Shown here: positions 22,026 through 39,986 of the stretch, piece by piece | Position numbering within the stretch: the stretch's first letter is position 1 | Layout of the letters: every line of letters starts with the position of its first letter | Sequence record: OQ603353.1 | DNA: 64,000 nt | Direction: 5' to 3' (one strand) | Made by a program: the position numbers and the translations under genes | Notes under the pieces: model-generated | What the model was told of the DNA's origin: nothing | What the model saw: only the letters and a program-made list of their open reading frames with translations | The model's database searches: none

Positions 22026-22967
22026 ATGCCTGTATCTAATCCACCTACCTTGTTGAGTGTCATTGCAGAGTTCGGAGGCCCTAACAATCTTGGGGCCTAT
22101 TACCGCAAAGGTCCATACGTACCTGACGGTCCTCCGCAGAATGCCAACATCAGTGATACGCCGGGCGGTCTTCGTCTCAGTCAGTTTGCGGGTGCGGTCA
22201 AGTACAATCTCAGTGCGTCCCTGAATCGCACGACCGCCAACACCAGTGGTAGTGGCAACAGCCAGTCGGGACGTGTCCTAACTCCACAGCTGATTGTTTA
22301 CCCCGTTAACGGCAGCGGCAACTACAGCTACTACTGGAACTACACCGCAGGCGTCCCTGTTAGCGGAAATACCAGTAGTACGTTCCAGCTGTACGCTGAT
22401 CTCAACAATGGTCAGAACATTTCTGGCAACGGTAACTGCGTGGTTACCGATAACGTCACTGGTCAGAATGCGATCCCTAGCTTTACGTTCTACCTAAGCT
22501 GGACGTATGAACGCCCACCCACCTGTGTTGTCATGGAAGCATACCTGCACGATGGAAAGCAGGCAGGCATGTACAACTCCAACGATCCTCTGCTGTTGGT
22601 CGATCCATACGCAAGGACTTCGGAGACGCTGAACATCGTAGATGCGCAGACCTTCACCCGAGAGTGTGTGACCTTGGTTACTGCCAATGGCTCACGCCTA
22701 ACGTGCTCCACCACTGCACCTATTCCAGTCAAAGCCGACTCGGAAACGCTGGTTCGTGCGGTGGATGCTCTAGGCCACCACGTTGCTACTACCACACGCC
22801 CTAACGACGTGATCCCATCGGTCACTTGGGATAAGGTAGTGCGTGTGCTGCCTGCTGGTGAGCGTGCTGTCCGCAATATCTACATCTACGACAAGTGCTT
22901 CTGGGCTTCGGATGACAATCGTTCGTTCATCCTCCATCACAACACGACTGGTAAGCAGATCATATGA
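22026..22967 (+). CDS. Fibre-tip adhesin A with C-terminal Hint (intein-like) domain
   Basis: ATG 22026; N-terminal SNPPTL.SV..EFGG docking domain; Hint from Cys 22524 (CVVMEAYL) to HHN 22943, followed by TTGKQII. Confidence 0.75.
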   Translation: MPVSNPPTLLSVIAEFGGPNNLGAYYRKGPYVPDGPPQNANISDTPGGLRLSQFAGAVKYNLSASLNRTTANTSGSGNSQSGRVLTPQLIVYPVNGSGNYSYYWNYTAGVPVSGNTSSTFQLYADLNNGQNISGNGNCVVTDNVTGQNAIPSFTFYLSWTYERPPTCVVMEAYLHDGKQAGMYNSNDPLLLVDPYARTSETLNIVDAQTFTRECVTLVTANGSRLTCSTTAPIPVKADSETLVRAVDALGHHVATTTRPNDVIPSVTWDKVVRVLPAGERAVRNIYIYDKCFWASDDNRSFILHHNTTGKQII

Positions 22968-23569
22968 TCGTCAACAAAGAACCACGCACCGCTACTCCGA
23001 TGAATTGGTTGCCTACGTACTACCTCAGTCGGATGTTTAACGCAGAAGAGTGCGCCACCATCATCAAGGAGTCAGAGGACTCCGGACTGTTTGTGCAAGG
23101 CCGCACCATTGGCGACAATAACGTGACTGTAACAGAGCAAGGCCGTCAGGTGGCCATTATCCGACTGGCTGGAGGTACGCTGTACGAAATGATGCGCCAA
23201 CGGATACTGGAACGGCTGCCTGACCTAAACTCCTGCTATCAGTTTGAACTGTTCGGCGCAGATGAAGTCTTCAAGGAAATCCATATCCTGAAGTACGTGG
23301 AAGGTAATTTCCACGGTGAACATTTGGACCTCGCCGGTTACGAGGAAATGTGCAACCGGAAGCTCAGCCTCATCGTCCAGTTGAATCCGGATTACGAGGG
23401 CGGTGAATTAGTCCTCTACAACTCTTATCCCGAGAAACCTCTGACCAATAGCAAGCAGGCTGGCGACGCAGTGGTGTTCCCTGCATGGATGCCGCACGAA
23501 GTAAGACCTGTTGACTACGGGACTAGATACGTTCTTGTGGTTTGGTTGCGAGGCCCTAAATTTAGATAG
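22964..23569 (+). CDS. 2OG-Fe(II) oxygenase (prolyl-hydroxylase-like), catalytic motifs intact
   Basis: HLD (HxD), RKLSLIVQL, YEGGEL, VFPAWMPHEV (distal His), GTRYVLV.W (2OG-binding Arg). Confidence 0.9.
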   Translation: MIVNKEPRTATPMNWLPTYYLSRMFNAEECATIIKESEDSGLFVQGRTIGDNNVTVTEQGRQVAIIRLAGGTLYEMMRQRILERLPDLNSCYQFELFGADEVFKEIHILKYVEGNFHGEHLDLAGYEEMCNRKLSLIVQLNPDYEGGELVLYNSYPEKPLTNSKQAGDAVVFPAWMPHEVRPVDYGTRYVLVVWLRGPKFR

Positions 23570-28890: not shown

Positions 28891-30033
28891 ATGACCCAAC
28901 TTTACATCACTGAGGCAGGCATCGCTGCTGCCAACTCGTCCAGTCCTAACGGACCTATGATCCAAATCGTGTCGTTCGCCCTAGGCAGCGATTACGGATA
29001 CACCCCTCCACCGTCCTCCGTGTACCCGGGCGCCAACAGCGTCGTTACTTCGCAGAGTGCGCTACGCGGCACGGTACGCTATCCAGTTGGTACTCAGCGT
29101 GCCGTACCCAGTAACTACCACCTCGCCGCTGATGGTATCACAGGCGTGTTCACGCTAGTGGTAGGTCTGGACGTGGGCGACTTCTCGTTTGGTGAAGTCG
29201 CACTCTACATGCCCGGCAACGTCATGTTCGGTATTGCAGTTCTTCCTCAACTGCAAACCAAACTGACTACCACACAGAGTCAGACGGGCAACATCATCAA
29301 CATGACGGTCAGCTTCCAGCTGAACGGTGTCAAGCCCAACATCACTGTGCAGAATGTCACGACCGCACTGGCTGATATTCGCACGGTCGGTACCGTTGAC
29401 GTGATGAGTCCCCCTTCGGCCAGCCCTACCAACAACGCCATTTCTTTGCAGGTTGATGAATACAACCGCAGCAACTTGATGACGAAGCGTGACACCGACC
29501 TGTGGCAGTCCCAGCAGTATGACTGGATTGTACATGAAGGTGTTGTGCAGGTATCGGGCGACAAGACTCTGAGTGATGCGACTCTGGCTACGTCGCCTAT
29601 CTACGTTGCACCGGGCCGCTACATTCTGCAATTCACCAGTGGTGCGTTGAAAGGTCAGGTTCGCCAAATCACAGCCTTCCCTGTGTGGGCTGCAAGTGTG
29701 GTTCGTCGCGTGGGTGACGTTATTCAGCCTACCAACAATCCCAACGTCCTACTTAGGTGTACTACCGCTGGCACTTCGGGTACTGCACAGCCAACGTGGA
29801 ACACTGGCACTTCGGGTGCCACCACTACGGATGGCACGGCGGTGTGGACGTATACGCCCAACAGGGATTCTCCGAATACCACGCTTTCGTGGGCGGGCTC
29901 TACCTCTTCCAATGCGCTGAACGGCGTTACCTACGCTGTGTACCGTGCCGCATCTTTCAGTGGCATTCGTCAGTACATCGGCGAATACATGCTAGACGCA
30001 ATGCCCATCAACTATTACAACCAACACCACTGA
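28891..30033 (+). CDS. Tail collar/proximal fibre protein with CBM5/12-like module
   Basis: MTQLYITEAGIAAA..IVSFALG..F.FGEVALY tail-collar-type N-terminus; WAAS..RVGDVI..RCTTAGTSG..PTW..DGTAVW module. Confidence 0.7.
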   Translation: MTQLYITEAGIAAANSSSPNGPMIQIVSFALGSDYGYTPPPSSVYPGANSVVTSQSALRGTVRYPVGTQRAVPSNYHLAADGITGVFTLVVGLDVGDFSFGEVALYMPGNVMFGIAVLPQLQTKLTTTQSQTGNIINMTVSFQLNGVKPNITVQNVTTALADIRTVGTVDVMSPPSASPTNNAISLQVDEYNRSNLMTKRDTDLWQSQQYDWIVHEGVVQVSGDKTLSDATLATSPIYVAPGRYILQFTSGALKGQVRQITAFPVWAASVVRRVGDVIQPTNNPNVLLRCTTAGTSGTAQPTWNTGTSGATTTDGTAVWTYTPNRDSPNTTLSWAGSTSSNALNGVTYAVYRAASFSGIRQYIGEYMLDAMPINYYNQHH

Positions 30034-30045
30034 GGATTTCCCAAC

Positions 30046-30393
30046 ATGGCTTTCACTCCTTCCTCCGGCGTCCTCGGTCAGATCAAGCCCTCGGGTGCCA
30101 CTGAGACTGTTCTCTACACCTGCCCTGCGGATGCACGTGCCTCCATTAGTGTCACCTGCTGCAATACGGATAGTGGTTCCACTACTGTAACGGTCAAGGT
30201 AAGGTCAGGTTCTACCTCCACTGCTCTTGTGAGCGGCGCACAGTTGGCACCTGCTGGGGAACAGGGACACTCAATCGACATTCGCGCTCTGATTCTTGGG
30301 CCGGGCCAATCGGTAGCAGTCACTAGCTTCAGCGGTACTGTAGATTTCAGTGCAATCGGGTACACGGCGCCTTCCAACGTCGTTGCGTTCTAA
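30046..30393 (+). CDS. Small structural protein (fibre-associated)
   Basis: 115 aa beta-rich (VLYTCP..SVTCCNTD); GAGGA RBS; between fibre genes. Confidence 0.6.
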   Translation: MAFTPSSGVLGQIKPSGATETVLYTCPADARASISVTCCNTDSGSTTVTVKVRSGSTSTALVSGAQLAPAGEQGHSIDIRALILGPGQSVAVTSFSGTVDFSAIGYTAPSNVVAF

Positions 30394-30403
30394 GAGGTGA
30401 CCG

Positions 30404-32689
30404 ATGATTACCCATCAGGATACACTGTTCTCCAACATCCTATACGGAAATAATTGGAGTGCAGCTACCTACCAAGCCGCAAATCGGTTCACCATCCAAG
30501 GTGACAAGCGAACTTCGTATGAGGTAGGTACCCAGGTTCAGATTCTCACGTCTGCTGTAGCTACTATGCAGTACAGCTACGTTAGTGCAGTTACGTTCGC
30601 CTCCAACGTTACTACGGTGACGGTGAGCGACGGTCTATTCGCTTCGGGTCAGAAGATCAACGTTCGTGCATCGCCGTTTGGTGCCAACAACATGCCCCTC
30701 GGCCGACGCTTCAAAGAAATCAGCGTGTTCGGTGCGAACGGCCTGACGATCTCGAATGCGAGTCCGAAGTTCACCCTGTTCGTTGAAGGCGTTGGTGCGG
30801 GCAAGGTCAACACGTTCACTTTCCAGCCGGGCTCGGATGGTATCTCGTTCAAGGTTGGCCGTGATGCAATCGGTCTCGATGCCATGCGCATTGACGCCAC
30901 TTCGACTGCCATCACCAAGGTGACGTTGTTCTCGCCACTGACCTTTGGCGCAACGTACACGGGTGGTCTGACTTCCCTGACCGATCTTCTGACGATTGGT
31001 CAGTATGCACTGACCTATTCGGCTACGGGTTCTTCGACCGGCAGTAACCGCCTGTATGTATCTGGCCCTAACGGTGGTGAGTTCACCGTTGGTCCTACCA
31101 ATGATGCTCAGGTGTTCCGTCGTATTCGACTGCGCGCCACTGACGTTGTGGTCGAGAACAATCCCGGCGGTTCCTCGCAAGCAGGCTCGATCTGGCATAG
31201 CCTCAACTTCGATCCTGACACCCGTGTTACCAAGGGTCAGAATGGTTCTTGGATGGATTCGGCTTACACTGCGATCAACAACCTTAACAACGCTCAGGGG
31301 TATTTCAACCAGTGGGCATCGGGCGCCGCACAGGCTCCTGTTGCAGGTTCGACGGGTGTTGTGCAAACCATGCACAGTGCGGGTGGCAACAACTTTAACC
31401 CTGTGGCTGGTGCTTCGCTGGTGCAGACGGCTTATGTCACCAATGGCACCGCACCTGCCCTGTATGTGCGACGCAACGTAGGTGCTTCGGGTTGGTCTGC
31501 ATGGACTAAGCTGTATACCCAAGCAGATTTCTCGCTTGGCGATTACGTCAAGATCGCAGGCGGTGATACCATCCAGTCCCCGATCACTGTACGTACTGCC
31601 TTGTCCGTTGGCACGACTGCGGATGCAACGTCCACCCTGAACTTCGGTACCTCGGCCAGTCCCAACGGTCCTGCTGCTACCATTTCTGTTACGGGCGGCG
31701 CAGCGACCACGGGTCGTGGTGCAATGACTATCAACGCGCAGTCCATCGCGCTGCCTGCACTGAACGTCAACGGTACGATGAACGTTTCGGGCGCTGCTTC
31801 GATGGCGGGCCCACTGACCATCACTACTGGCTCCATACTGCTGGGTAACGGCACGTATGGGGAATCGCGTATTAGCAATACCTTCGACGACTGGTATTTG
31901 TATTCCAGTCCTACGGGACTTGGCTGGTACAGTATCAGTAAGGGTAGTGCTTTCTCACTGGACAAGAACAGCAAGGCGTTCACGTTCAATGGTGCGGGTA
32001 CCATCAACGGTCAGACTACCATCAATGGTGGTCTGAACGTGGCGAGTGGTAGCGGTATCATCACTTCGGGCAACGTTGTTGGTGCCAACGGCAACTTCTC
32101 CAATGACGTGTTTGCTCCGGGCGCTTTCCGTGGTGCTCGCCTGCACATTTACGCAGGCTGCATTGCCTACGGTCAGGGCTTCCTGCCTAGCTGGAACGAC
32201 TACGGTGATGGCGCAACGGTCCTGACTAACGCACGCGGCGGTGGTACGGGCGGTTTCAAGTTCCGTCAGATGAATAGTGACGGTGGTGGTCAGGTTTTCC
32301 TTGCCTTCATCAACCCGAACGGTACCATCGGTTCGGCGTCGGACGAACGCATGAAGGAATTCGGTAAGGTACTCGACCTGTCTGACGCTCTTCGGTTCAT
32401 CCGTGAGCAGCGAGTCAAGCATATCAAGTGGAAGCACACCGGCGAGGAGGATATTGCGTTTGGTGCGCAGAGCATCTTCAAGACCACTAGGTTCCTGGCC
32501 CACTATGACAAGGGTGCTGACTTCTGGCAGCTGTACTACCCGAAGGTCGCTCTGTATCATCACGAAGCTCTCTTCCATATCCTTGAAGTGCAGAACAATC
32601 ACGAAGCCGACATTCAGATTCTGATTCGCAAGAACGAAAATCTGGAAGAGGAAGTGAAGCAGCTGCGCGAACGGTTGGATTCTCTCTAA
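30404..32689 (+). CDS. Long tail fibre with C-terminal peptidase S74-type intramolecular chaperone
   Basis: 761 aa, Gly/Thr/Ser beta-rich; IWHSLNFDP knuckle; SDERMKE motif then coiled-coil end. Confidence 0.85.
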   Translation: MITHQDTLFSNILYGNNWSAATYQAANRFTIQGDKRTSYEVGTQVQILTSAVATMQYSYVSAVTFASNVTTVTVSDGLFASGQKINVRASPFGANNMPLGRRFKEISVFGANGLTISNASPKFTLFVEGVGAGKVNTFTFQPGSDGISFKVGRDAIGLDAMRIDATSTAITKVTLFSPLTFGATYTGGLTSLTDLLTIGQYALTYSATGSSTGSNRLYVSGPNGGEFTVGPTNDAQVFRRIRLRATDVVVENNPGGSSQAGSIWHSLNFDPDTRVTKGQNGSWMDSAYTAINNLNNAQGYFNQWASGAAQAPVAGSTGVVQTMHSAGGNNFNPVAGASLVQTAYVTNGTAPALYVRRNVGASGWSAWTKLYTQADFSLGDYVKIAGGDTIQSPITVRTALSVGTTADATSTLNFGTSASPNGPAATISVTGGAATTGRGAMTINAQSIALPALNVNGTMNVSGAASMAGPLTITTGSILLGNGTYGESRISNTFDDWYLYSSPTGLGWYSISKGSAFSLDKNSKAFTFNGAGTINGQTTINGGLNVASGSGIITSGNVVGANGNFSNDVFAPGAFRGARLHIYAGCIAYGQGFLPSWNDYGDGATVLTNARGGGTGGFKFRQMNSDGGGQVFLAFINPNGTIGSASDERMKEFGKVLDLSDALRFIREQRVKHIKWKHTGEEDIAFGAQSIFKTTRFLAHYDKGADFWQLYYPKVALYHHEALFHILEVQNNHEADIQILIRKNENLEEEVKQLRERLDSL

Positions 32690-32732
32690 GGACATTGGGC
32701 ACAGGGACGTGCTCCCTTTTTAGGTAGAGGCT

Positions 32733-34124
32733 ATGTGGATCACCCCTCAGAATCAAACTCTTGATGACACGTTCGATCCCTACTTTCCGGGTACAACTCG
32801 GTGGTATGGTTATACCGGCATCCTCATCAACAACACGCAAGACACCTACGATCGGTACGCTCCTTTGCAGTATGGCAGGCAAGCTCCATCCACGGCGATC
32901 CTTGCGCAGAATCAGGTAGACCTGAATCAGATTTACGCAGCCCGAGGTACAGCAGGCTACCTGCAAGGTATCTCTATCCCCAATTGCTACGTAGGTTGCT
33001 CGGGCGTTACCATCAACGATCTTCTCGCTGCGCGATGCACCATCATCATCAAGAACGACGGTACGTGGCAGCAGTGGTTCTATTCCACCAACTACAAGAC
33101 GGATAGCCCGGGTGCGTATGCACCTCCCAATCGCGGCATTCCTCGAACCGAAACCAACTTCAGCAACGGACGCATGAACGCCGCTGGTAACTGGGCACAG
33201 ATTCCGTTCGCTGGTGTAGGTAACAACTACGAGACTTTCTGCCACGCTCCTTGGGCCCCCTACGAAAGCAAGAACCCACCCGATCTGGATTGGGGTACTG
33301 CCGATCACTATAATCGGTACGATGGCGCACTCATCAACTATATCTGGCACAACTTTAAGGGCCAAGGACAGTTCGGTAGCGCTAGTGATCCCTACGTGGT
33401 GCAGAACACTACACAGAACCCTAATGAAGACATTCCAGATGGTCGGGTATATCGCATCGACCGCGATATTCGGTTCACCCTTGGCTTGACTGCACAGGGA
33501 CGCAACAACGTTCGTTGGAACTACGATGACAACGGTGCTCTGTCATGGTACAACCGAGCCAACTTTTCGGTGTACATTCAGACACCCGGCGGCGGTCAGC
33601 GTGTAGGTGCCACGTGCTTGATGACCAATGAGATTCGATGGAACGCGTGGAATTGGACGGGTGGTAGCGTTGGTGGAGGTGGCGGCGGAGGTGGCGGCGG
33701 TTGCGTTGCTGCTACCAGCTATGTTGACTTCCAAAAGACCGCAGGCACGGTTGAGGCGGGCGACTATCTGATGGGCATGACTGATGATCTGCAATTCATG
33801 GAGCTACATGTCCTGAGCGTGCGTCGTCAAGTACAGCCATGTGTCCGACTCTACTCCAAGAGTGGTGTCACCCTTGTGTGCTCAAAGTCTACGCCGCTGA
33901 CCCTACAGAACGGAGACTGTGTGCTGGCAGGCGAGGCACGTGCAGGCATTAAGCTTCCGGTACGATTCTTCGCTGCTGATCCTGAGTGGGAAACCATCAT
34001 CAAGATCGAGGAGGTTGGCAACCGAGAAGTGATGCTCATCAACTGCGGTGGACAGAGCTATGCTGCCGGTGAGTTGCCGGGCCGTTATATCTACACCCAC
34101 AACAACAACCAGCAGAAGATGTGA
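32733..34124 (+). CDS. Fibre-tip adhesin C with Gly10 linker and C-terminal Hint domain
   Basis: 463 aa; aromatic/Asn-rich body; G10 then Cys 33702 (CVAATSYV), LVCSKSTPL, WETIIKIEEVG.REV, IYTHN 34103. Confidence 0.78.
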   Translation: MWITPQNQTLDDTFDPYFPGTTRWYGYTGILINNTQDTYDRYAPLQYGRQAPSTAILAQNQVDLNQIYAARGTAGYLQGISIPNCYVGCSGVTINDLLAARCTIIIKNDGTWQQWFYSTNYKTDSPGAYAPPNRGIPRTETNFSNGRMNAAGNWAQIPFAGVGNNYETFCHAPWAPYESKNPPDLDWGTADHYNRYDGALINYIWHNFKGQGQFGSASDPYVVQNTTQNPNEDIPDGRVYRIDRDIRFTLGLTAQGRNNVRWNYDDNGALSWYNRANFSVYIQTPGGGQRVGATCLMTNEIRWNAWNWTGGSVGGGGGGGGGGCVAATSYVDFQKTAGTVEAGDYLMGMTDDLQFMELHVLSVRRQVQPCVRLYSKSGVTLVCSKSTPLTLQNGDCVLAGEARAGIKLPVRFFAADPEWETIIKIEEVGNREVMLINCGGQSYAAGELPGRYIYTHNNNQQKM

Positions 34125-34543
34125 TGATTGGTTCTGACCAACTCTCAGAAGTAGGTGTACCTGTCGGAGAGCTCTCCATTGGGAGGACTCTAGACGTATA
34201 TGCGGTGGACGATCTACACTCGGTCATCCGCCTGAAAGGAACCGTCTCAAATCGGGTCCTCCGTAGTGCAGAAGTAGTCACCATCACAACTGCCTCCGGC
34301 GCTTCCGTTGTGGTGGCTGCCCAAAGTCGCCTCCCTGTCTATAGCGGACAGACGGCGCTGGCTAAGAATGTTGGTGCCAACATGATTGCTGTGATGGCCC
34401 CTAATGGCGCTTTTCGGTGGGAGCGGGTTGACACCATCGAGGCTGGTACTGAGGCCGTAGTGGACCTCAAGTGTGAAGGCTACATAGTAGCCGGTAACGA
34501 TCCTAAAACCGGGCTAATCTTGGTGTCTGGATCGCTGTCGTGA
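34121..34543 (+). CDS. Stand-alone Hint-fold-like protein lacking catalytic residues
   Basis: 140 aa; ITTASGASVVV, FRWERVDTIEAG..VVDL..YIVAG align with Hint strands; no Cys1 and no terminal HN. Confidence 0.6.
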   Translation: MMIGSDQLSEVGVPVGELSIGRTLDVYAVDDLHSVIRLKGTVSNRVLRSAEVVTITTASGASVVVAAQSRLPVYSGQTALAKNVGANMIAVMAPNGAFRWERVDTIEAGTEAVVDLKCEGYIVAGNDPKTGLILVSGSLS

Positions 34544-34555
34544 CAGTCAATTTTA
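34544..34555 (+). promoter_or_regulatory. Candidate phage late promoter motif CAGYYAATTTTA (copy 1)
   Basis: CAGTCAATTTTA, intergenic; matches copies at 43423 and 54782. Confidence 0.5.
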
Positions 34556-34622
34556 CGTAAGGACATAAGGCTACGGATAGCAGCCTCACATAAAGACACT
34601 TCCCAACAAATAAGGAACGATC

Positions 34623-35300
34623 ATGCAACTCCAGGTTCTTCTCTCCTCCGTCGAAGCTCTCAAGTACGTTGCCGGCCTGCGTCTGCCTGCTGTCAAGGCG
34701 TTCAAGGTCAGTTCGTACCTGCAACGTGCTCAGGTCCACATTGACGCATGGCAGGCAACCGGCCGGACTCTGGCCCAGCGCCACTACGGCGAAGACCAGC
34801 AGCCGCTGTCTCCCGAAGATGCCGTACAGTTCAAGGCAGCCACTGACGAAGTGCTTGCTTCGGATGTCGAAGTCGATACCGTCAAGCTCCTGAGCTACCC
34901 GGCAGACTTCAAGGAGGAAAGTTTCATCCCCCTGAATATGGCCATCCTGTCTGAGCACTTTGTTGACGTTACCAAGCCCGAAGCTACTGGCGTCACCAAG
35001 ATTAGTCGGGGTAAGCTGATTGGCGCTTACATGTCTCTTCAACAGTTGGGTCAGCAGGAACTGCCGAAGGCTGTTGGTGAGAATCTGCTGTTCAACCTGA
35101 TGACGGTCCGAGACCTACTGAATTCGTTCTCGGAGCGCGACGTTGAACTGACTAAGCAGGGCGATGCGAAGGCTCTGGAGGAATATCGTTCCGAGGAAGT
35201 GGAGGTCAACTTCTATCCCATCAACATCAATGCGTTTGGTGATGTTGAAGTGGCTCCGGCACTTCTCGTAGATGCCGCGTGGCTCATCACTGAGGAATGA
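34623..35300 (+). CDS. Tandem two-domain DUF1617-like protein, putative fibre assembly chaperone
   Basis: Halves share L..L....LP.......L..D/EVEV....I pattern; follows the fibre cluster. Confidence 0.55.
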   Translation: MQLQVLLSSVEALKYVAGLRLPAVKAFKVSSYLQRAQVHIDAWQATGRTLAQRHYGEDQQPLSPEDAVQFKAATDEVLASDVEVDTVKLLSYPADFKEESFIPLNMAILSEHFVDVTKPEATGVTKISRGKLIGAYMSLQQLGQQELPKAVGENLLFNLMTVRDLLNSFSERDVELTKQGDAKALEEYRSEEVEVNFYPININAFGDVEVAPALLVDAAWLITEE

Positions 35301-35303
35301 TTC

Positions 35304-35849
35304 ATGGCTGAGTTTGACATTGCCTATAGGCAGCAGAACATCGAGTCGGATTTGATTGATGATCCTACTGACCCTGGGGCTGTGACAAACTATGGTTGGA
35401 ACCTTGGCTCCCTCCGCTTGGTGGGAGTCGAGGCCGACTACGAATTCGTCAAGAGTATGACGGCGGCAACTGCCAAGGAATTGTATCGTCAGTATTTCTG
35501 GCATCCACTTTGGACCGAACTCAAATGTCAGCAGGCGGCAAACAAGCTGTTTACCCTCGCTGTGACAACGTGTGCACCCAACAACTTCAACTTGGCTACT
35601 CGCTGTTTGCAGAGGGCCTTGTGGGCATCGGGCGCTTACGTGCATGAGGATGGAAAGCTTACAGAGGATGTAATAAGCGCGGCTAACGCCGTTGAGTGTT
35701 CGGCCCTAAGCTCTGCCATGCGTAGTGAAATGGCCTCCTACTACAGGACGCTTAACGCGGAGTATGAACTGAGGGTCAAGTACAAGCTGCCCGTGGTAGT
35801 CCCCGTGAATCGTTACATTCGCGTGTGGCTTCACAACTCCTATCGTTGA
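35304..35849 (+). CDS. Divergent GH108-like lysozyme with peptidoglycan-binding segment
   Basis: IESDLIDDPTDPGAVTNYG vs canonical HEGGY.NDP.DPGG.TN.G; KELYRQYFW; CLQRAL...EDGKL. Confidence 0.7.
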   Translation: MAEFDIAYRQQNIESDLIDDPTDPGAVTNYGWNLGSLRLVGVEADYEFVKSMTAATAKELYRQYFWHPLWTELKCQQAANKLFTLAVTTCAPNNFNLATRCLQRALWASGAYVHEDGKLTEDVISAANAVECSALSSAMRSEMASYYRTLNAEYELRVKYKLPVVVPVNRYIRVWLHNSYR

Positions 35850-35859
35850 AGAGGATGGC

Positions 35860-36585
35860 ATGACCATGAGCACGGAAACCGTTCTGATCGGTCTTGGCTG
35901 TCTACCTGATAACGCTCAAGCCCTTGAGGGGGCGTGCATTCGGTACGGCATCGAGACTACGTGGCACAAGTCCATTTTCATCGGACAGATCGCTGTAGAA
36001 ACAGGTGGCTTCCGTGCCACCCGCGAAAGCATGAATTACAGCGTTGAAGGTCTTATCAATGGTTTTGGCCGTCACCGTATCAGTGTGGCGGACGCTCAGA
36101 AATACGGGCGTATTGATAAGGTCGTGAACGGCAAGAAAACTGTTATCCGAGCAGCTAACCAAGTAGCCATCGCCAACATCCTGTACGGCGGTGAGTGGGG
36201 ACGCAAGAATTTGGGTAATACCGAGTTGAACGACGGATGGAATTTCAGGGGCGGCGGTGACAAGCAATTGACTGGCCGCGCTAATTGGACCAACTACAGC
36301 ATGGACACCTATGGTGACTTGCGTGTGCTGGAGAATCCTACTCTGATCGAACTCTATCCCGACAAGAGCTACACTGCTGGTTGGTTCTGGCAACGCAACA
36401 AGCTGGGTGACATTGCTTCGCAATATGTGCTCCCTGATGATCCCAAATCTCCGGAGTACGATTCCATCCTGCGTTCTACTGTTACGGTAGTTACCAAGAA
36501 GGTCAACGGCGGTGACAAGGGTTTGGAGGATCGCATCATGTGGACGAAAAAGGCCCTGCAAGGCTTCAATCAACTCGTACTGTGA
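35860..36585 (+). CDS. GH19-family endolysin
   Basis: FIGQIAVETGGF, RESMNYS, DGWNFRGGG..QLTGRANW, VTKKVNGG.KGLEDR. Confidence 0.92.
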   Translation: MTMSTETVLIGLGCLPDNAQALEGACIRYGIETTWHKSIFIGQIAVETGGFRATRESMNYSVEGLINGFGRHRISVADAQKYGRIDKVVNGKKTVIRAANQVAIANILYGGEWGRKNLGNTELNDGWNFRGGGDKQLTGRANWTNYSMDTYGDLRVLENPTLIELYPDKSYTAGWFWQRNKLGDIASQYVLPDDPKSPEYDSILRSTVTVVTKKVNGGDKGLEDRIMWTKKALQGFNQLVL

Positions 36586-36591
36586 CTAACG

Positions 36592-36620
36592 TGCTGGGAA
36601 CATTAGTTCCCAGCATTCTT
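36592..36620 (+). terminator. Intrinsic terminator after endolysin
   Basis: TGCTGGGAAC-ATTA-GTTCCCAGCA then TTCTT. Confidence 0.75.
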
Positions 36621-36637
36621 CGTATAGGCCCCTGACT

Positions 36638-37003
36638 ATGAGAATTTTAGCCAATAGCACCAAGGTACGCGAAGGGGATTTCTCCAAGCTTCGTATCCCA
36701 AAAGCAAAGCAAGTCAAGGTGCACACGCATGACGCATGGCAGGGCCGAAAGAATCATCACCTGTCCTACGATTTTACTGCACCTAGCACTAGCATGCACC
36801 ATCAAGCAGTCGGGAAGGCCATCCATGAGCATCTTGCGTCTCATGGCCTGTCTCCACACAAACGCTCCAGTTCGGGCAACACGGTTACCATTGAGTACAG
36901 GCACCCATCGGGTCACCGCGCCGTTGTCAAGATGAAGCGTACAAAGCTCGCAGGCGATCCCAACCATCACGTGGAATTCGCCGTAGAGAAGACCGGTAAC
37001 TAA
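36638..37003 (+). CDS. His/Lys-rich small protein
   Basis: 121 aa; HEHLASHGL..EYRHP module resembles repeats in 47320. Confidence 0.55.
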   Translation: MRILANSTKVREGDFSKLRIPKAKQVKVHTHDAWQGRKNHHLSYDFTAPSTSMHHQAVGKAIHEHLASHGLSPHKRSSSGNTVTIEYRHPSGHRAVVKMKRTKLAGDPNHHVEFAVEKTGN

Positions 37004-37023
37004 CACTTCAATGAGGTAACGTC

Positions 37024-37365
37024 ATGCCCTTGTGGTTGACTGCATGGTTTGCGAAAATGTGGGCCAAGTGCTCGCAGTATGTCATTGCCGCTGGCTCCAT
37101 ATTGGCGGCAATTGCTGGTATCTTCCTGTACGGTCGCTTCAAGGGTAAGTCCGCCGCCGATGCAAAGCATGCGGAGCAGGATGCGAAACGAATTGAGGCT
37201 GAAACCAAGATCGTTGAGAAGATCGACCAAGCTCACGAATCTACCCGTGAGCAGGTCGAGGAAAAAATCGAGAAAATCCCTGCTCCAACTACGGATCCTA
37301 ACGAGACAGTTAGGGTGGGGGATGCACCTAAAGATTCGGCCGCAGGCAAATTGAGGGGCTGGTAA
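37024..37365 (+). CDS. Inner-membrane spanin (Rz-like)
   Basis: N-terminal TM (VIAAGSILAAIAGIFLYG) then charged coiled coil; overlaps a lipoprotein gene. Confidence 0.8.
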   Translation: MPLWLTAWFAKMWAKCSQYVIAAGSILAAIAGIFLYGRFKGKSAADAKHAEQDAKRIEAETKIVEKIDQAHESTREQVEEKIEKIPAPTTDPNETVRVGDAPKDSAAGKLRGW

Positions 37366-37592
37366 TGAAAACTCTCCTGATTATCGCCATCGCCTTACTT
37401 GCAGGCTGCGCAACTACTCCACAAGTGGTGGCTCAAACCGACATTTGCGCTGGCTGGAAGGCCATCAAGGTCAACGAAAACGACGAATTCACGGATGGAA
37501 CTGCCAAGCAGATTCTAGCGCACAATTGTCAAGGCGCAGCCTTGAAGTGCTGGGCCTATCCGAGGAATGATCCCCAAATTTGTGAACGCTAA
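37365..37592 (+). CDS. Outer-membrane spanin lipoprotein (Rz1-like)
   Basis: MKTLLIIAIALLAGC lipobox; additional Cys; overlapped-spanin arrangement. Confidence 0.82.
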   Translation: MKTLLIIAIALLAGCATTPQVVAQTDICAGWKAIKVNENDEFTDGTAKQILAHNCQGAALKCWAYPRNDPQICER

Positions 37593-37601
37593 GAGGTAAC
37601 A

Positions 37602-39986
37602 ATGCCGCTGCCCACTTCCATCCAACCCATCATTGAGAATACTCCGGACATTCTCAAAGCATGTGTTGAAGTCTATCAGTCCATGTCTCTGCTACAGGAC
37701 CGGGGCTTCATGTTCTTGAACGAGCAGATTGAATTGCTCACGTCTACGGGTCAGGTGGCACACGTCACCACTGCGTATGGTACTCAGGTTGAGTTGCCCA
37801 CGTATCATACTCTGGCAGCCACCTCGAACGCCTCTACGGAATTGGTGCAGCAGTTTCAGCGCCAAATCTACGACGTGTTCACTAGCAACAACCCGACGGT
37901 AATCATTAGTGACGGTCTTGGTAACGACACTCAGGTGATCGGCTATCAGACCATGAACGACAAGGTTAACGCTACGTCGGACGTGGCTTCTATCGCCAAC
38001 ACCAACGCGCTCAACGCGCTGGGTAAGGCCACCGAAGCGCTGAACCGTGTTACCAACTCCGAGCTCAACGCCAACGTGGCTTTGGCGAACGGCACACCAC
38101 CCACCTATCAGACGCGTTCGGTTCTCGATACTGTTACGACGATGCAACGCAATAGTATCGCCTACGTGATCGCTGATCCGGTTCCCACCAACAACACCAT
38201 CTACCAGTACAACGGTACTGCATGGACTCCTCAGTATGATCGGCTGCTGACCGCCCTAGGTAGTCCGCGTGGCTATCTGGCCCCACTCACGGGCGCTATC
38301 TACCGTACCTATCAGAGCAAGCTAGAATCACTGGTTACTCCTGAAGACGTGGGGGCCAAGGGTGACGGCACTACTGATGACGGTCCCGCCTTCATCGCCG
38401 CCGCTGCGAACGGGCGCCTGATTGTGCTGTCCCCCAACAAGACCTACCGTATCACCTCCAACGCCACTGTAGGCAGCATCATGCCTAATGGCTCCAAGAT
38501 TTCCATCGGTCCGGGCGCTACCCTGACTTTTGATGGCCTGATCGTGGACGATGCTACGGTTGTGTTTACGGGTGAGGGCAACGCCGTCAGCAGCACTAGC
38601 GTCTACAGCGTTGGCTGGTTCGCAGGTGATAGCTTTAACGCCAAGTGGCTCGCCATGAAGCGTGGTTTCACCCAGCAGGTAGTCAAGTACGTCACGCTGC
38701 CGATGCCGCACCGCACCGATCCTGCGGCAACTACCGCAGCTTCGGACGGTCAGGCACGTTGGAAGCTTACGGACTCTGTGGTCTTCAACAATACGGAATC
38801 TAACCTGATCGTCAATGCGCTGGGCGAATTCCTTGTGGACCAGTCCGCCTCGCTGTCGGCAGGTGCTTTCATCCTTGGCGAGCTGACTGCCCCCTCCAGC
38901 ATCAACTTCCCGAACGGCTTGCGCGTCCTGTGTAACGGTAGTGCAACTTATGGTCTGCGCGTTCGCGGCGGTAGCAGCATCAGTTTTGAAGAACTACTGG
39001 TTCTGGACAGTGCAACCAACTCCGGCATCCTGTGGGACAACTATAACGGCCCGAGTCATCGCATTAGCTTCGACCGCGTGCGTATCGACGGCTTTGGTGT
39101 GGCAGGCGTAACTATCCAGCCGCAGGGTGGCCCGAGCTATCCGAACCAATCGCCTCCGATCACTTCGTGTTCGATCAATTCGCTGCAAACGCGAGGCGGT
39201 CGTAGCGGCTGCACGAACTTCGTCAAGATCGCGGGTAACGTGGATGGCCTGACCATCACCAACGTCCTTGAAGATCGTCCGTCGGGTAGCCTGCTGTTCG
39301 ACTGGAGCGATTCCATGTTCTCGCTGACTAACACTCAGTACGGCACGATTGGTCGCTCCGGTTTGGAGATTGGTCACATTCAGGCGACCAGCACCCAGCT
39401 GCCCATCATCCGTGCGTTCGACAGCACTTCCGCTGCTGACCCTGCGAATGGCAAGATCACGTTCTCGGTAGAGCACATCTATCAGGCGTATCAGCAGAAC
39501 ATCGTTCCGGTCATCATGGAATACTCGAAGAACTGCACCATCGGACGTATCAACGCAGGACGCCCCACCTCTAGTCAGGAAGTGCTTGTCCGTATCTTCC
39601 GCGACTGCGAGGGTATTTCTCTGACCGGTACACACTACACCGCTGTTCGTAGTCAGGCCCTGCGTACTCAGTTTGACGGACGCTTCGGCATGGTGGACGT
39701 GGTGCAGCAGAACTCTGCGATCTTCACGGATCTAAACACTGCGGCACTGACGTTCAAGTTTGACCTAATCTGCCTCACCTCCGCGTCTACTTACGCTTCG
39801 GGTTGGGCAGGCGCCAACGCTCTCGATATTCCCACGTCGCTGACCAAGAATATCAACGTTGCCCAGGGTCCGCTGGAAGGAACGACCGGCCCTGAAAGCA
39901 CCATCAGCATCAGTGCTGCGGAAAACAAGTTCTTTGTGGAAAACCGAACCGGACAGAATCAGCTCGTTGCGGTTCTCATGTCCTAA
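37602..39986 (+). CDS. Tailspike/depolymerase with pectate-lyase-like beta-helix
   Basis: 794 aa; TPEDVGAKGDGTTDDGPAFIAAA cap motif followed by right-handed beta-helix-type repeats. Confidence 0.85.
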   Translation: MPLPTSIQPIIENTPDILKACVEVYQSMSLLQDRGFMFLNEQIELLTSTGQVAHVTTAYGTQVELPTYHTLAATSNASTELVQQFQRQIYDVFTSNNPTVIISDGLGNDTQVIGYQTMNDKVNATSDVASIANTNALNALGKATEALNRVTNSELNANVALANGTPPTYQTRSVLDTVTTMQRNSIAYVIADPVPTNNTIYQYNGTAWTPQYDRLLTALGSPRGYLAPLTGAIYRTYQSKLESLVTPEDVGAKGDGTTDDGPAFIAAAANGRLIVLSPNKTYRITSNATVGSIMPNGSKISIGPGATLTFDGLIVDDATVVFTGEGNAVSSTSVYSVGWFAGDSFNAKWLAMKRGFTQQVVKYVTLPMPHRTDPAATTAASDGQARWKLTDSVVFNNTESNLIVNALGEFLVDQSASLSAGAFILGELTAPSSINFPNGLRVLCNGSATYGLRVRGGSSISFEELLVLDSATNSGILWDNYNGPSHRISFDRVRIDGFGVAGVTIQPQGGPSYPNQSPPITSCSINSLQTRGGRSGCTNFVKIAGNVDGLTITNVLEDRPSGSLLFDWSDSMFSLTNTQYGTIGRSGLEIGHIQATSTQLPIIRAFDSTSAADPANGKITFSVEHIYQAYQQNIVPVIMEYSKNCTIGRINAGRPTSSQEVLVRIFRDCEGISLTGTHYTAVRSQALRTQFDGRFGMVDVVQQNSAIFTDLNTAALTFKFDLICLTSASTYASGWAGANALDIPTSLTKNINVAQGPLEGTTGPESTISISAAENKFFVENRTGQNQLVAVLMS

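Follow-up and report, generated by a model that had tools for sequence, protein, structure and literature searches.

The 64,000-nucleotide stretch of sequence record OQ603353.1 analysed here (hereafter the window) comes from a Xanthomonas jumbo phage of approximately 227 kb, and the region of interest is its tail module. It contains two adjacent open reading frames (ORFs), ORF1 and ORF2. A prediction made from the sequence alone had proposed a hedgehog/intein (Hint) domain joined by ten glycines to an adhesin and followed by an overlapping, catalytically dead Hint gene. Our analysis indicates that ORF1 ends in a Hint domain that probably processes its own precursor, and that ORF2 is a separate Hint fold lacking the catalytic residues, which may act on its neighbour. 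The features of the pair are as follows.

32733..34124, + strand: ORF1, 463 amino acids (aa), predicted precursor composed of an N-terminal domain, Gly10, a Hint domain and a 6-aa tail (ORF list, translation and tail-gene context)
32733..33671, + strand: N-terminal "cargo" domain of ORF1, aa 1-313, fold unclassified (phrog_11610 match, AlphaFold2 (AF2) model)
33672..33701, + strand: ten consecutive Gly codons, Gly314-Gly323, mixed GGT/GGA/GGC; predicted flexible linker providing the -1 residue of a Gly-Cys scissile bond
33702..34103, + strand: Hint autoprocessing domain, Cys324-Asn457, 134 residues (AF2, Foldseek, PDB sequence matches, column counts)
34104..34121, + strand: six-residue tail after the terminal Asn, with Asn at +1 and Lys last but one
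34124..34543, + strand: ORF2, 139 aa, free-standing and catalytically dead Hint paralogue, or pseudo-Hint (AF2, Foldseek, hhalign, alignment)

The junction between the two halves of ORF1 is as originally described. Ten glycine codons of mixed type (GGT GGA GGT GGC GGC GGA GGT GGC GGC GGT) stand directly ahead of the TGC of Cys324 at 33702, and they encode the only run of at least five glycines among the window ORFs of at least 100 aa. The protein ends in I-Y-T-H-N followed by N-N-Q-Q-K-M, confirming that position +1 holds no nucleophile. The Hint domain keeps the block A Cys and the block G Thr-His-Asn (His456-Asn457), and its block B reads Ser384-x-x-Thr387-Pro388 in place of Thr-x-x-His. The missing block-B His, also part of the original prediction, can be assigned to a residue: in a profile alignment to a solved intein (PhoCDC21-1), the phage S-K-S-T-P-L lies opposite the intein T-P-T-H-P-F, and therefore Thr387 occupies the position of the block-B His and Ser384 that of the block-B Thr.

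An AF2 model of the ORF1 C-terminal domain, built from a 21-sequence alignment, has predicted local distance difference test (pLDDT) values of mostly 72-96. A Foldseek search of the PDB with this model gave 58 matches at E<=1e-3, including mini-inteins (gp41-1 with the maximum template modelling (TM) score, 0.83), hedgehog 1at0 and the bacterial intein-like (BIL) domains 2lwy and 6y75. Hedgehog, BIL domains and inteins were all matched with a probability of 1.00; the BIL structures fit no better than inteins or hedgehog, and the profile comparison covered the Pfam Hint-type models only. At the sequence level, a plain search of the PDB with the ORF1 Hint found the gp41-1 intein (E 0.017), and a profile of ten relatives found the PhoCDC21-1 intein (E 0.0034). 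Scans of ORF1, its halves and ORF2 against Pfam, PHROGs and NCBIfam returned no Hint family, and nothing at all for ORF2; the Pfam Hint-type models gave no match at E<=1 to 21 members of the family described below.

[quoted passage not shown] Within its Hint domain, the window and PhiXhv differ by 24 synonymous changes and 1 non-synonymous change. Synonymous divergence is uneven along 32733-34543 when the window is compared with PhiXhv-15, PhiXhv-16 and PhiXhv-12 (L001, L029 and L030): dS is 0.30 for the Hint domain, 0.15-0.18 for the N-terminal domain and 0.05 for ORF2, which suggests recombination breakpoints inside or between the two genes.

Less can be said about the cargo. The only match of the ORF1 N-terminal domain is to phrog_11610, a family of unknown function (aa 10-120, E 4.7e-10); no Pfam, NCBIfam or PDB match was obtained, including by a profile search of the PDB. 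AF2 predicts a beta-rich core with moderate confidence and leaves aa 1-74 unmodelled. A search for Hint-free versions of this cargo recovered only relatives that also end in a Hint domain. ORF1 lies downstream of genes for a baseplate wedge, a tail-collar fibre and an S74-like fibre, and phrog_11610 also matches the N-terminal regions of the Hint-terminated proteins of phages RTH11 and LucasX, which are encoded in fibre clusters. Because of this position and the shared phrog_11610 region, ORF1 is, on the evidence of its sequence, a component of the fibre cluster, and its N-terminal domain is probably a distal fibre or adhesin part. The label "adhesin" given to it at the outset is plausible but an assumption, since neither Pfam, NCBIfam nor the PDB offers a named relative for the domain.

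The gene downstream had been described as overlapping ORF1, with a start at 34121, and as a dead Hint with neither Cys1 nor His-Asn. The overlap is real and amounts to a single base, shared by the ORF1 TGA and the ORF2 ATG (TGATG). The start is most likely this ATG at 34124, because it is annotated so in PhiXhv-15 and all relatives begin there; the GTG at 34121 is less likely. The original prediction would have fallen had this gene shown a non-Hint fold. Instead, an AF2 model based on only six sequences is a confident Hint fold (pLDDT 91.4, predicted TM score (pTM) 0.87), and Foldseek returned 49 matches at E<=1e-3, headed by hedgehog Hint (TMq 0.73-0.74) and completed by 48 other Hint structures. 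Sequence comparisons agree with this assignment. BLASTP aligns ORF2 to the ORF1 Hint with 26% identity over 74 residues; within a small set of ORFs, a profile of the Hint family picks out ORF2 with E values of 5e-6 to 4e-7, and searching in the opposite direction works too; hhalign of the ORF2 family against the active Hint family gives 96.8% probability (E 2.6e-10, 122 columns); and an ORF2 profile finds NpuDnaB intein (E 0.007) and other inteins in the PDB.

ORF2 has none of the residues on which Hint chemistry depends. Its Met1 aligns with the Cys1 position of active Hints, it has no block-B pair, and its chain stops at the position of the His-Asn, itself absent, or just short of it. Among the eight dead-Hint sequences, position 1 is Met in 8/8, the block-B columns vary (A/T/G and S/A/Q/T), five run 2-4 residues beyond the His-Asn position, and all four catalytic positions are lost in every one. 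ORF2 is thus an intact fold lacking the means of catalysis. That both the ORF1 C-terminal domain and ORF2 are Hint folds, the latter catalytically dead, we regard as practically certain.

The dead Hints nevertheless form a family of their own. Across eight lineages at 28-55% identity, their frames are intact and 137-141 aa long, and motifs specific to the family are conserved at approximately residues 84-102 and 120-134. They diverge faster than the active Hints: in the same genome pairs, ORF2 proteins share 41% and 34% identity versus 57% and 47% for the active domain. Scored on profiles of partnered Hints and of other Hints to trace its origin, the dead Hint favoured the latter, which is the more diverse profile; such scoring falls short of a clean test of phylogeny. 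Fusion of ORF1 and ORF2 by frameshifting was considered and rejected, since there is no slippery site and the frame and spacing of the junction vary among relatives, as expected for simple translational coupling. A promoter and terminator scan around the pair gave nothing above chance.

Relatives of ORF2 are few. When 1.84 billion representative proteins were searched exhaustively, these relatives fell into six clusters at 50% identity, with lengths of 137-139 aa; a word-indexed search recovers ORF2 alone, and the exhaustive search adds the other five. No ORF2 relatives were found in IMG/VR, and among GenBank phages ORF2 was seen only in five near-identical isolates. The original prediction had called for a check of co-occurrence in homologous loci, and this gave a uniform answer: a dead Hint lies immediately 3' of an ORF1-type Hint protein of approximately 450-474 aa in 8/8 lineages examined. 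The eight junctions vary between an overlap of 4 bases and a gap of 3 bases.

The active Hint module is far more widespread. Family counts given here refer to 38 distinct sequences at 28-57% identity. The same protein collection holds 20 further clusters with 37-57% identity over the Hint, among which there are at least four unrelated N-terminal parts, and IMG/VR contributed 12 more distant loci on contigs of up to 332 kb. A scan of species-representative bacterial genomes (GTDB) for the Hint found no relatives, which is weak evidence since it used a single peptide pattern. Four isolated phages encode Hint-terminated proteins, annotated in all cases as hypothetical or uninformatively.

XacN1: ORF231, 285 aa, Hint-terminated
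RTH11: unnamed protein, 444 aa, Hint-terminated
LucasX: LUCX_306, 448 aa, Hint-terminated
Stenotrophomonas phage DLP_6: "VlrC", more than 1800 aa, Hint-terminated

In the DLP_6 record (L034, KU682439.2, 1-5447), VlrC ends in six Gly, Cys1 and, at the far end of the module, Ser-His-Asn with an 8-residue tail; tblastn reported a second place in this record as well.

The active-site pattern of the family is constant. Both Cys at position 1 and the terminal His-Asn are present in 38/38 members, as are the block-B Ser and Pro, with the block-B Thr in 37/38; a His at block B occurs in none of the 38. A run of at least three Gly precedes Cys1 in 36/38 (median 6, maximum 12), and the -1 residue is Gly or Ser/Thr. 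The residue after His-Asn is Ser or Thr in 4/38 and Cys in 0/38. The tail beyond the Asn measures 4-9 residues and has a Lys among its last three positions in 35/38. The module always occupies the extreme C-terminus, on unrelated cargoes: PHROGs identify the distant member L017 as a genuine tail fibre, another cargo carries PKD domains, and a class of 280-aa proteins has weak Ig-like matches. In RTH11 and LucasX, the Hint protein gene lies at the far end of the fibre cluster, 3' of two fibre genes and 5' of a tail assembly chaperone gene (phrog_1158, E 1.8e-45). Fitting no existing profile family, the module apparently constitutes an undescribed phage family.

A second member is encoded in the window itself.

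22026..22967, + strand: second family member, Hint at approximately 22524-22943 (hmmsearch with a profile of the family that did not yet include it, E 5.6e-14)

This protein has Pro-Pro-Thr instead of Gly ahead of Cys1 and ends in His-His-Asn plus 7 aa; its gene lies downstream of baseplate-hub genes. The next gene (22964-23569, +) overlaps it by 4 bases and encodes a 2OG-Fe(II) oxygenase (phrog_61, E 4.5e-28), an odd neighbour for tail proteins. Two other loci, L006 (4927-6894, 322 and 331 aa) and L008 (4987-7014, 334 and 337 aa), have two apparently active Hint-terminated genes in tandem; the preceding gene of 127-130 aa is not a dead Hint in either.

An 8-kb stretch around ORF1 and ORF2 is 100% identical in Ep026 and Ep032 and 97-98% identical in PhiXhv-12, -15 and -16. 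The records give Xanthomonas sp. as the host of Ep026 and Erwinia sp. as that of Ep032, and their tail and lysis region (window 30001-38000) is 100% identical. Reading 5' to 3', the gene order is baseplate wedge (25440), tail protein (27272), tail-collar fibre (28885), a 115-aa gene and a 761-aa fibre (30404), then ORF1, ORF2, a 225-aa gene, two lysis glycoside hydrolases, spanins and a tailspike-like gene. Two of these neighbours matter most here.

30404..32689, + strand: 761-aa fibre protein whose C-terminus resembles an S74-type self-cleaving intramolecular chaperone (translation; relatives)
34623..35300, + strand: conserved 225-aa gene (synteny), 3' of the Hint gene or genes in all related loci, with or without a dead Hint

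A Pfam scan of the 761-aa fibre of the window gave no S74 match; its positional homologues in related loci carry PF13884 Peptidase_S74. With an S74-like end on this fibre and a Hint on ORF1, adjacent genes would therefore bear two different self-removing C-terminal modules. The 225-aa protein of the window has no family match, and its relatives match phrog_1401 (unknown function). In XacN1-like phages and in RTH11 and LucasX, its slot is occupied by a tail assembly chaperone, and no homology was detected between the 225-aa gene and the chaperones at the same position in RTH11 and XacN1. The 115-aa gene (30046-30393, +) and the 225-aa gene (34623-35300, +) are found at the same places in all of the related fibre clusters examined. 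Further downstream, 5' of the spanins, two differing cell-wall hydrolase genes lie side by side (35304-36585, +), one GH108-like with a PG_binding_3 match and the other endolysin/chitinase-like (phrog_181, E 2e-43). A close metagenomic relative (L002, 9881-10720) has an additional 279-aa gene in its lysis region, absent from the window, with a weak match to PF03496 (ADP-ribosyltransferase exotoxin family).

How might the pair work? Cys1, a Gly-Cys junction, an invariant His-Asn and a +1 position that offers no nucleophile are hallmarks of BIL domains, and we therefore read ORF1 as a self-processing precursor whose C-terminal Hint would be an autoprocessing module resembling the A-type BIL domains. 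In the proposed first step, Cys324 would attack the carbonyl of Gly323 in an N-to-S acyl shift, so that the oligo-Gly linker would end in a thioester. Resolution of this thioester, for which water or a cytoplasmic thiol is the most likely agent, would then yield an N-terminal tail protein of approximately 33 kDa with an oligo-Gly C-terminus. Finally, cyclisation of Asn457 would remove the six-residue tail. The Hint would thus be a removable C-terminal module, in the slot held by the S74 chaperone on the neighbouring fibre. ORF2, as a translationally coupled paralogue, would most likely act in trans as a chaperone, cap or docking partner. We give this combined reading, in which ORF1 self-processes in the manner of a BIL domain and ORF2 has a non-catalytic part in its maturation, a probability of about 0.5. 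Its two halves differ in strength: self-processing by ORF1 is probable from its sequence, and cleavage only, as originally proposed, is the likely outcome. An action of ORF2 on the maturation or assembly of ORF1 is a tentative proposal that builds on position and co-occurrence.

Several observations weigh against this combined reading. The block-B His is normally important for the acyl shift, and it is missing throughout the family, a loss that some inteins nevertheless survive by means of compensating changes (PMC7664689). Simple N-terminal cleavage does not account for the conserved Lys of the tail or for the retention of the Asn, and the papers on XacN1, LucasX and PhiXhv contain no mention of the Hint-protein genes or of cleavage. 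As for ORF2, net charge and isoelectric point reveal no pattern or complementarity between dead Hint, active Hint and N-terminal domain, and the selection data are thin, with 5 synonymous versus 2 non-synonymous differences between close phages. Hint-terminated genes with other cargoes have no adjoining dead Hint, the tandem pairs of L006 and L008 included, and neither does the second family member in the same phage. As the eight loci are all related to one another by synteny, the link of the dead Hint to one type of cargo is also inseparable from common descent.

The unexplained Lys and Asn allow for another fate of the thioester, namely ligation of the Gly carbonyl to an amine. The acceptor might be the alpha-amine of the tail peptide once Asn cyclisation has freed it, which would be BIL-type splicing without a side-chain nucleophile, or else a Lys, either the conserved one in the tail or one on another virion protein; a covalently joined cargo would result, and the dead Hint could serve as a docking platform. 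Neither the invariant His-Asn nor the short Lys-containing tail is needed for plain N-terminal cleavage, the length and flexibility of the Gly linker could bring the thioester within reach of an acceptor, and several cargoes are short Ig-like or PKD proteins without a recognisable virion-anchoring domain. BIL domains have also been reported to ligate without nucleophilic side chains, to judge from titles cited in PMC7664689. However, BIL domains yield mainly cleaved products (PMC7664689), and the conserved Lys could simply be structural, so that we regard ligation as unlikely.

About equally doubtful is the original suggestion for ORF2, that the dead Hint hetero-oligomerises with the still-attached active Hint and times either cleavage or trimerisation of the cargo. 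Regulation of active paralogues by pseudoenzyme partners is common, and domain swapping is possible in inteins; the shared fold, the adjacent and translationally coupled genes and the strict co-occurrence would all suit such a partnership. Most members of the Hint family, however, do without one, the lack of charge complementarity offers no help, and each of the two Hints, being a complete fold, has no need of complementation.

A more sceptical view, which we consider quite unlikely, is that processing is carried out by neither Hint: the ORF1 domain would also have been inactivated, through loss of its block-B His, leaving two structural or binding modules in the virion. The complete absence of that His from the family and the failure of every Pfam Hint model to recognise the domain agree with this view. 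It fits poorly with the invariance of Cys1 and His-Asn across sequences as divergent as these, given that the dead copy quickly lost all of its catalytic positions, and the Gly-Cys junction and constant extreme C-terminal placement suit a processing function. A bolder form of the ligation idea seems highly improbable to us. Here, oligo-Gly and Hint together would make up a phage ligation device coupling the cargo C-terminus to an amine, which could belong to another tail component or, if activation is delayed, to a molecule on the host surface; the dead Hint would be a docking or acceptor-presenting partner, and hedgehog-like covalent attachment would occur in virions. Hardly credible, finally, is a view of ORF2 as the leftover, decaying or without function, of a duplicated Hint-terminated gene, which the tandem active pairs and its faster evolution might suggest, given the intact frames retained in eight lineages down to 28% identity, the family-specific motifs, the very confident fold prediction from six sequences and the conserved coupling to the upstream stop.

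To our knowledge, self-removing C-terminal modules of tail fibres have so far been represented mainly by the S74 chaperones; a large jumbo-phage survey mentions S74 alone in this capacity, and a literature search turned up no account of phage tail proteins that bear Hint domains. If ORF1 is processed as proposed, thioester-based Hint chemistry would be a second kind of self-removing fibre module. The module spans fibres, Ig/PKD proteins and giant repeat proteins in large phages of Xanthomonas, Stenotrophomonas and uncultured hosts; domain libraries miss it, and so its genes are annotated as hypothetical. A family that keeps Cys1 and His-Asn and replaces the block-B His offers a natural case of Hint chemistry without that residue, and the presence of an active and a pseudo-enzyme Hint side by side may reveal a non-catalytic job for the fold in virion assembly. 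The true ends of the mature proteins matter for modelling and annotating the receptor-binding apparatus of biocontrol phages. The system should therefore interest the fields of both Hint chemistry and fibre maturation.

Among known systems, we infer that the ORF1 module works like an A-type BIL domain or a hedgehog Hint without the sterol region. A-type BIL domains (Amitai 2003; Dassa 2004) lack a +1 nucleophile and give mainly cleaved products rather than spliced ones (PMC7765530, PMC7664689). The phage Hints share with them the fold, the N-terminal Cys, the C-terminal His-Asn and the absence of a +1 nucleophile and of a homing endonuclease, as well as residence on variable, non-conserved proteins of surface type instead of conserved enzymes. 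They differ in having no Pfam profile match, in lying at the extreme C-terminus with a tail of 4-9 residues, in their oligo-Gly linker and Ser-x-x-Thr-Pro block B, and in being found in phage, not bacterial, genomes. The hedgehog Hog/Hint domain (1at0) is likewise a C-terminal Hint acting at a Gly-Cys bond (Gly323-Cys324 in ORF1) and releasing its cargo via a thioester; it is the top structural match of ORF2 and a strong match of the ORF1 Hint. Unlike hedgehog, ORF1 has no sterol or adduct-recognition region, with six residues following the Hint, and it keeps the His-Asn.

Class 1 mini-inteins (gp41-1, NpuDnaB, Ssp DnaB) provide the best structure and sequence matches, and blocks A, F and G are recognisable. 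The phage domain is, in contrast, not inserted into a conserved site of a host protein, and the "C-extein" in the family is 4-9 residues long. We rejected a true intein as an explanation for ORF1, as there is no insertion site, no +1 Cys/Ser/Thr and no block-B His. In the pre-toxin HINT (PT-HINT) arrangement of polymorphic toxins, the Hint lies just ahead of a C-terminal toxin domain (PMC3482391); this was also rejected for ORF1, which has only its six-residue tail after the Hint and no PT-HINT profile match.

Two fibre-associated systems resemble the pair in position. Like the Tfa/phrog_1158-type fibre assembly chaperones, one of which is found at this place in RTH11 and LucasX, ORF2 follows directly on a fibre-cluster gene; it has no homology to them, and a possible chaperone role for ORF2 is an analogy drawn from gene position only. 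The comparison with S74 chaperones made in the original prediction stands in part. These too are self-removing C-terminal modules of phage fibre proteins, and an S74-type end occupies the same C-terminal slot on the gene immediately upstream. The folds, however, are unrelated, and so is the chemistry, S74 being a trimerisation chaperone with a Ser-Lys dyad; scans of ORF1 and ORF2 for PF13884 Peptidase_S74 gave no match. For a Hint that has outlived its chemistry, one precedent is the yeast HO endonuclease, in which a splicing-dead Hint is kept for a non-catalytic binding role. The HO domain is part of a larger enzyme, whereas ORF2 is a free-standing protein of 139 aa encoded beside its active paralogue.

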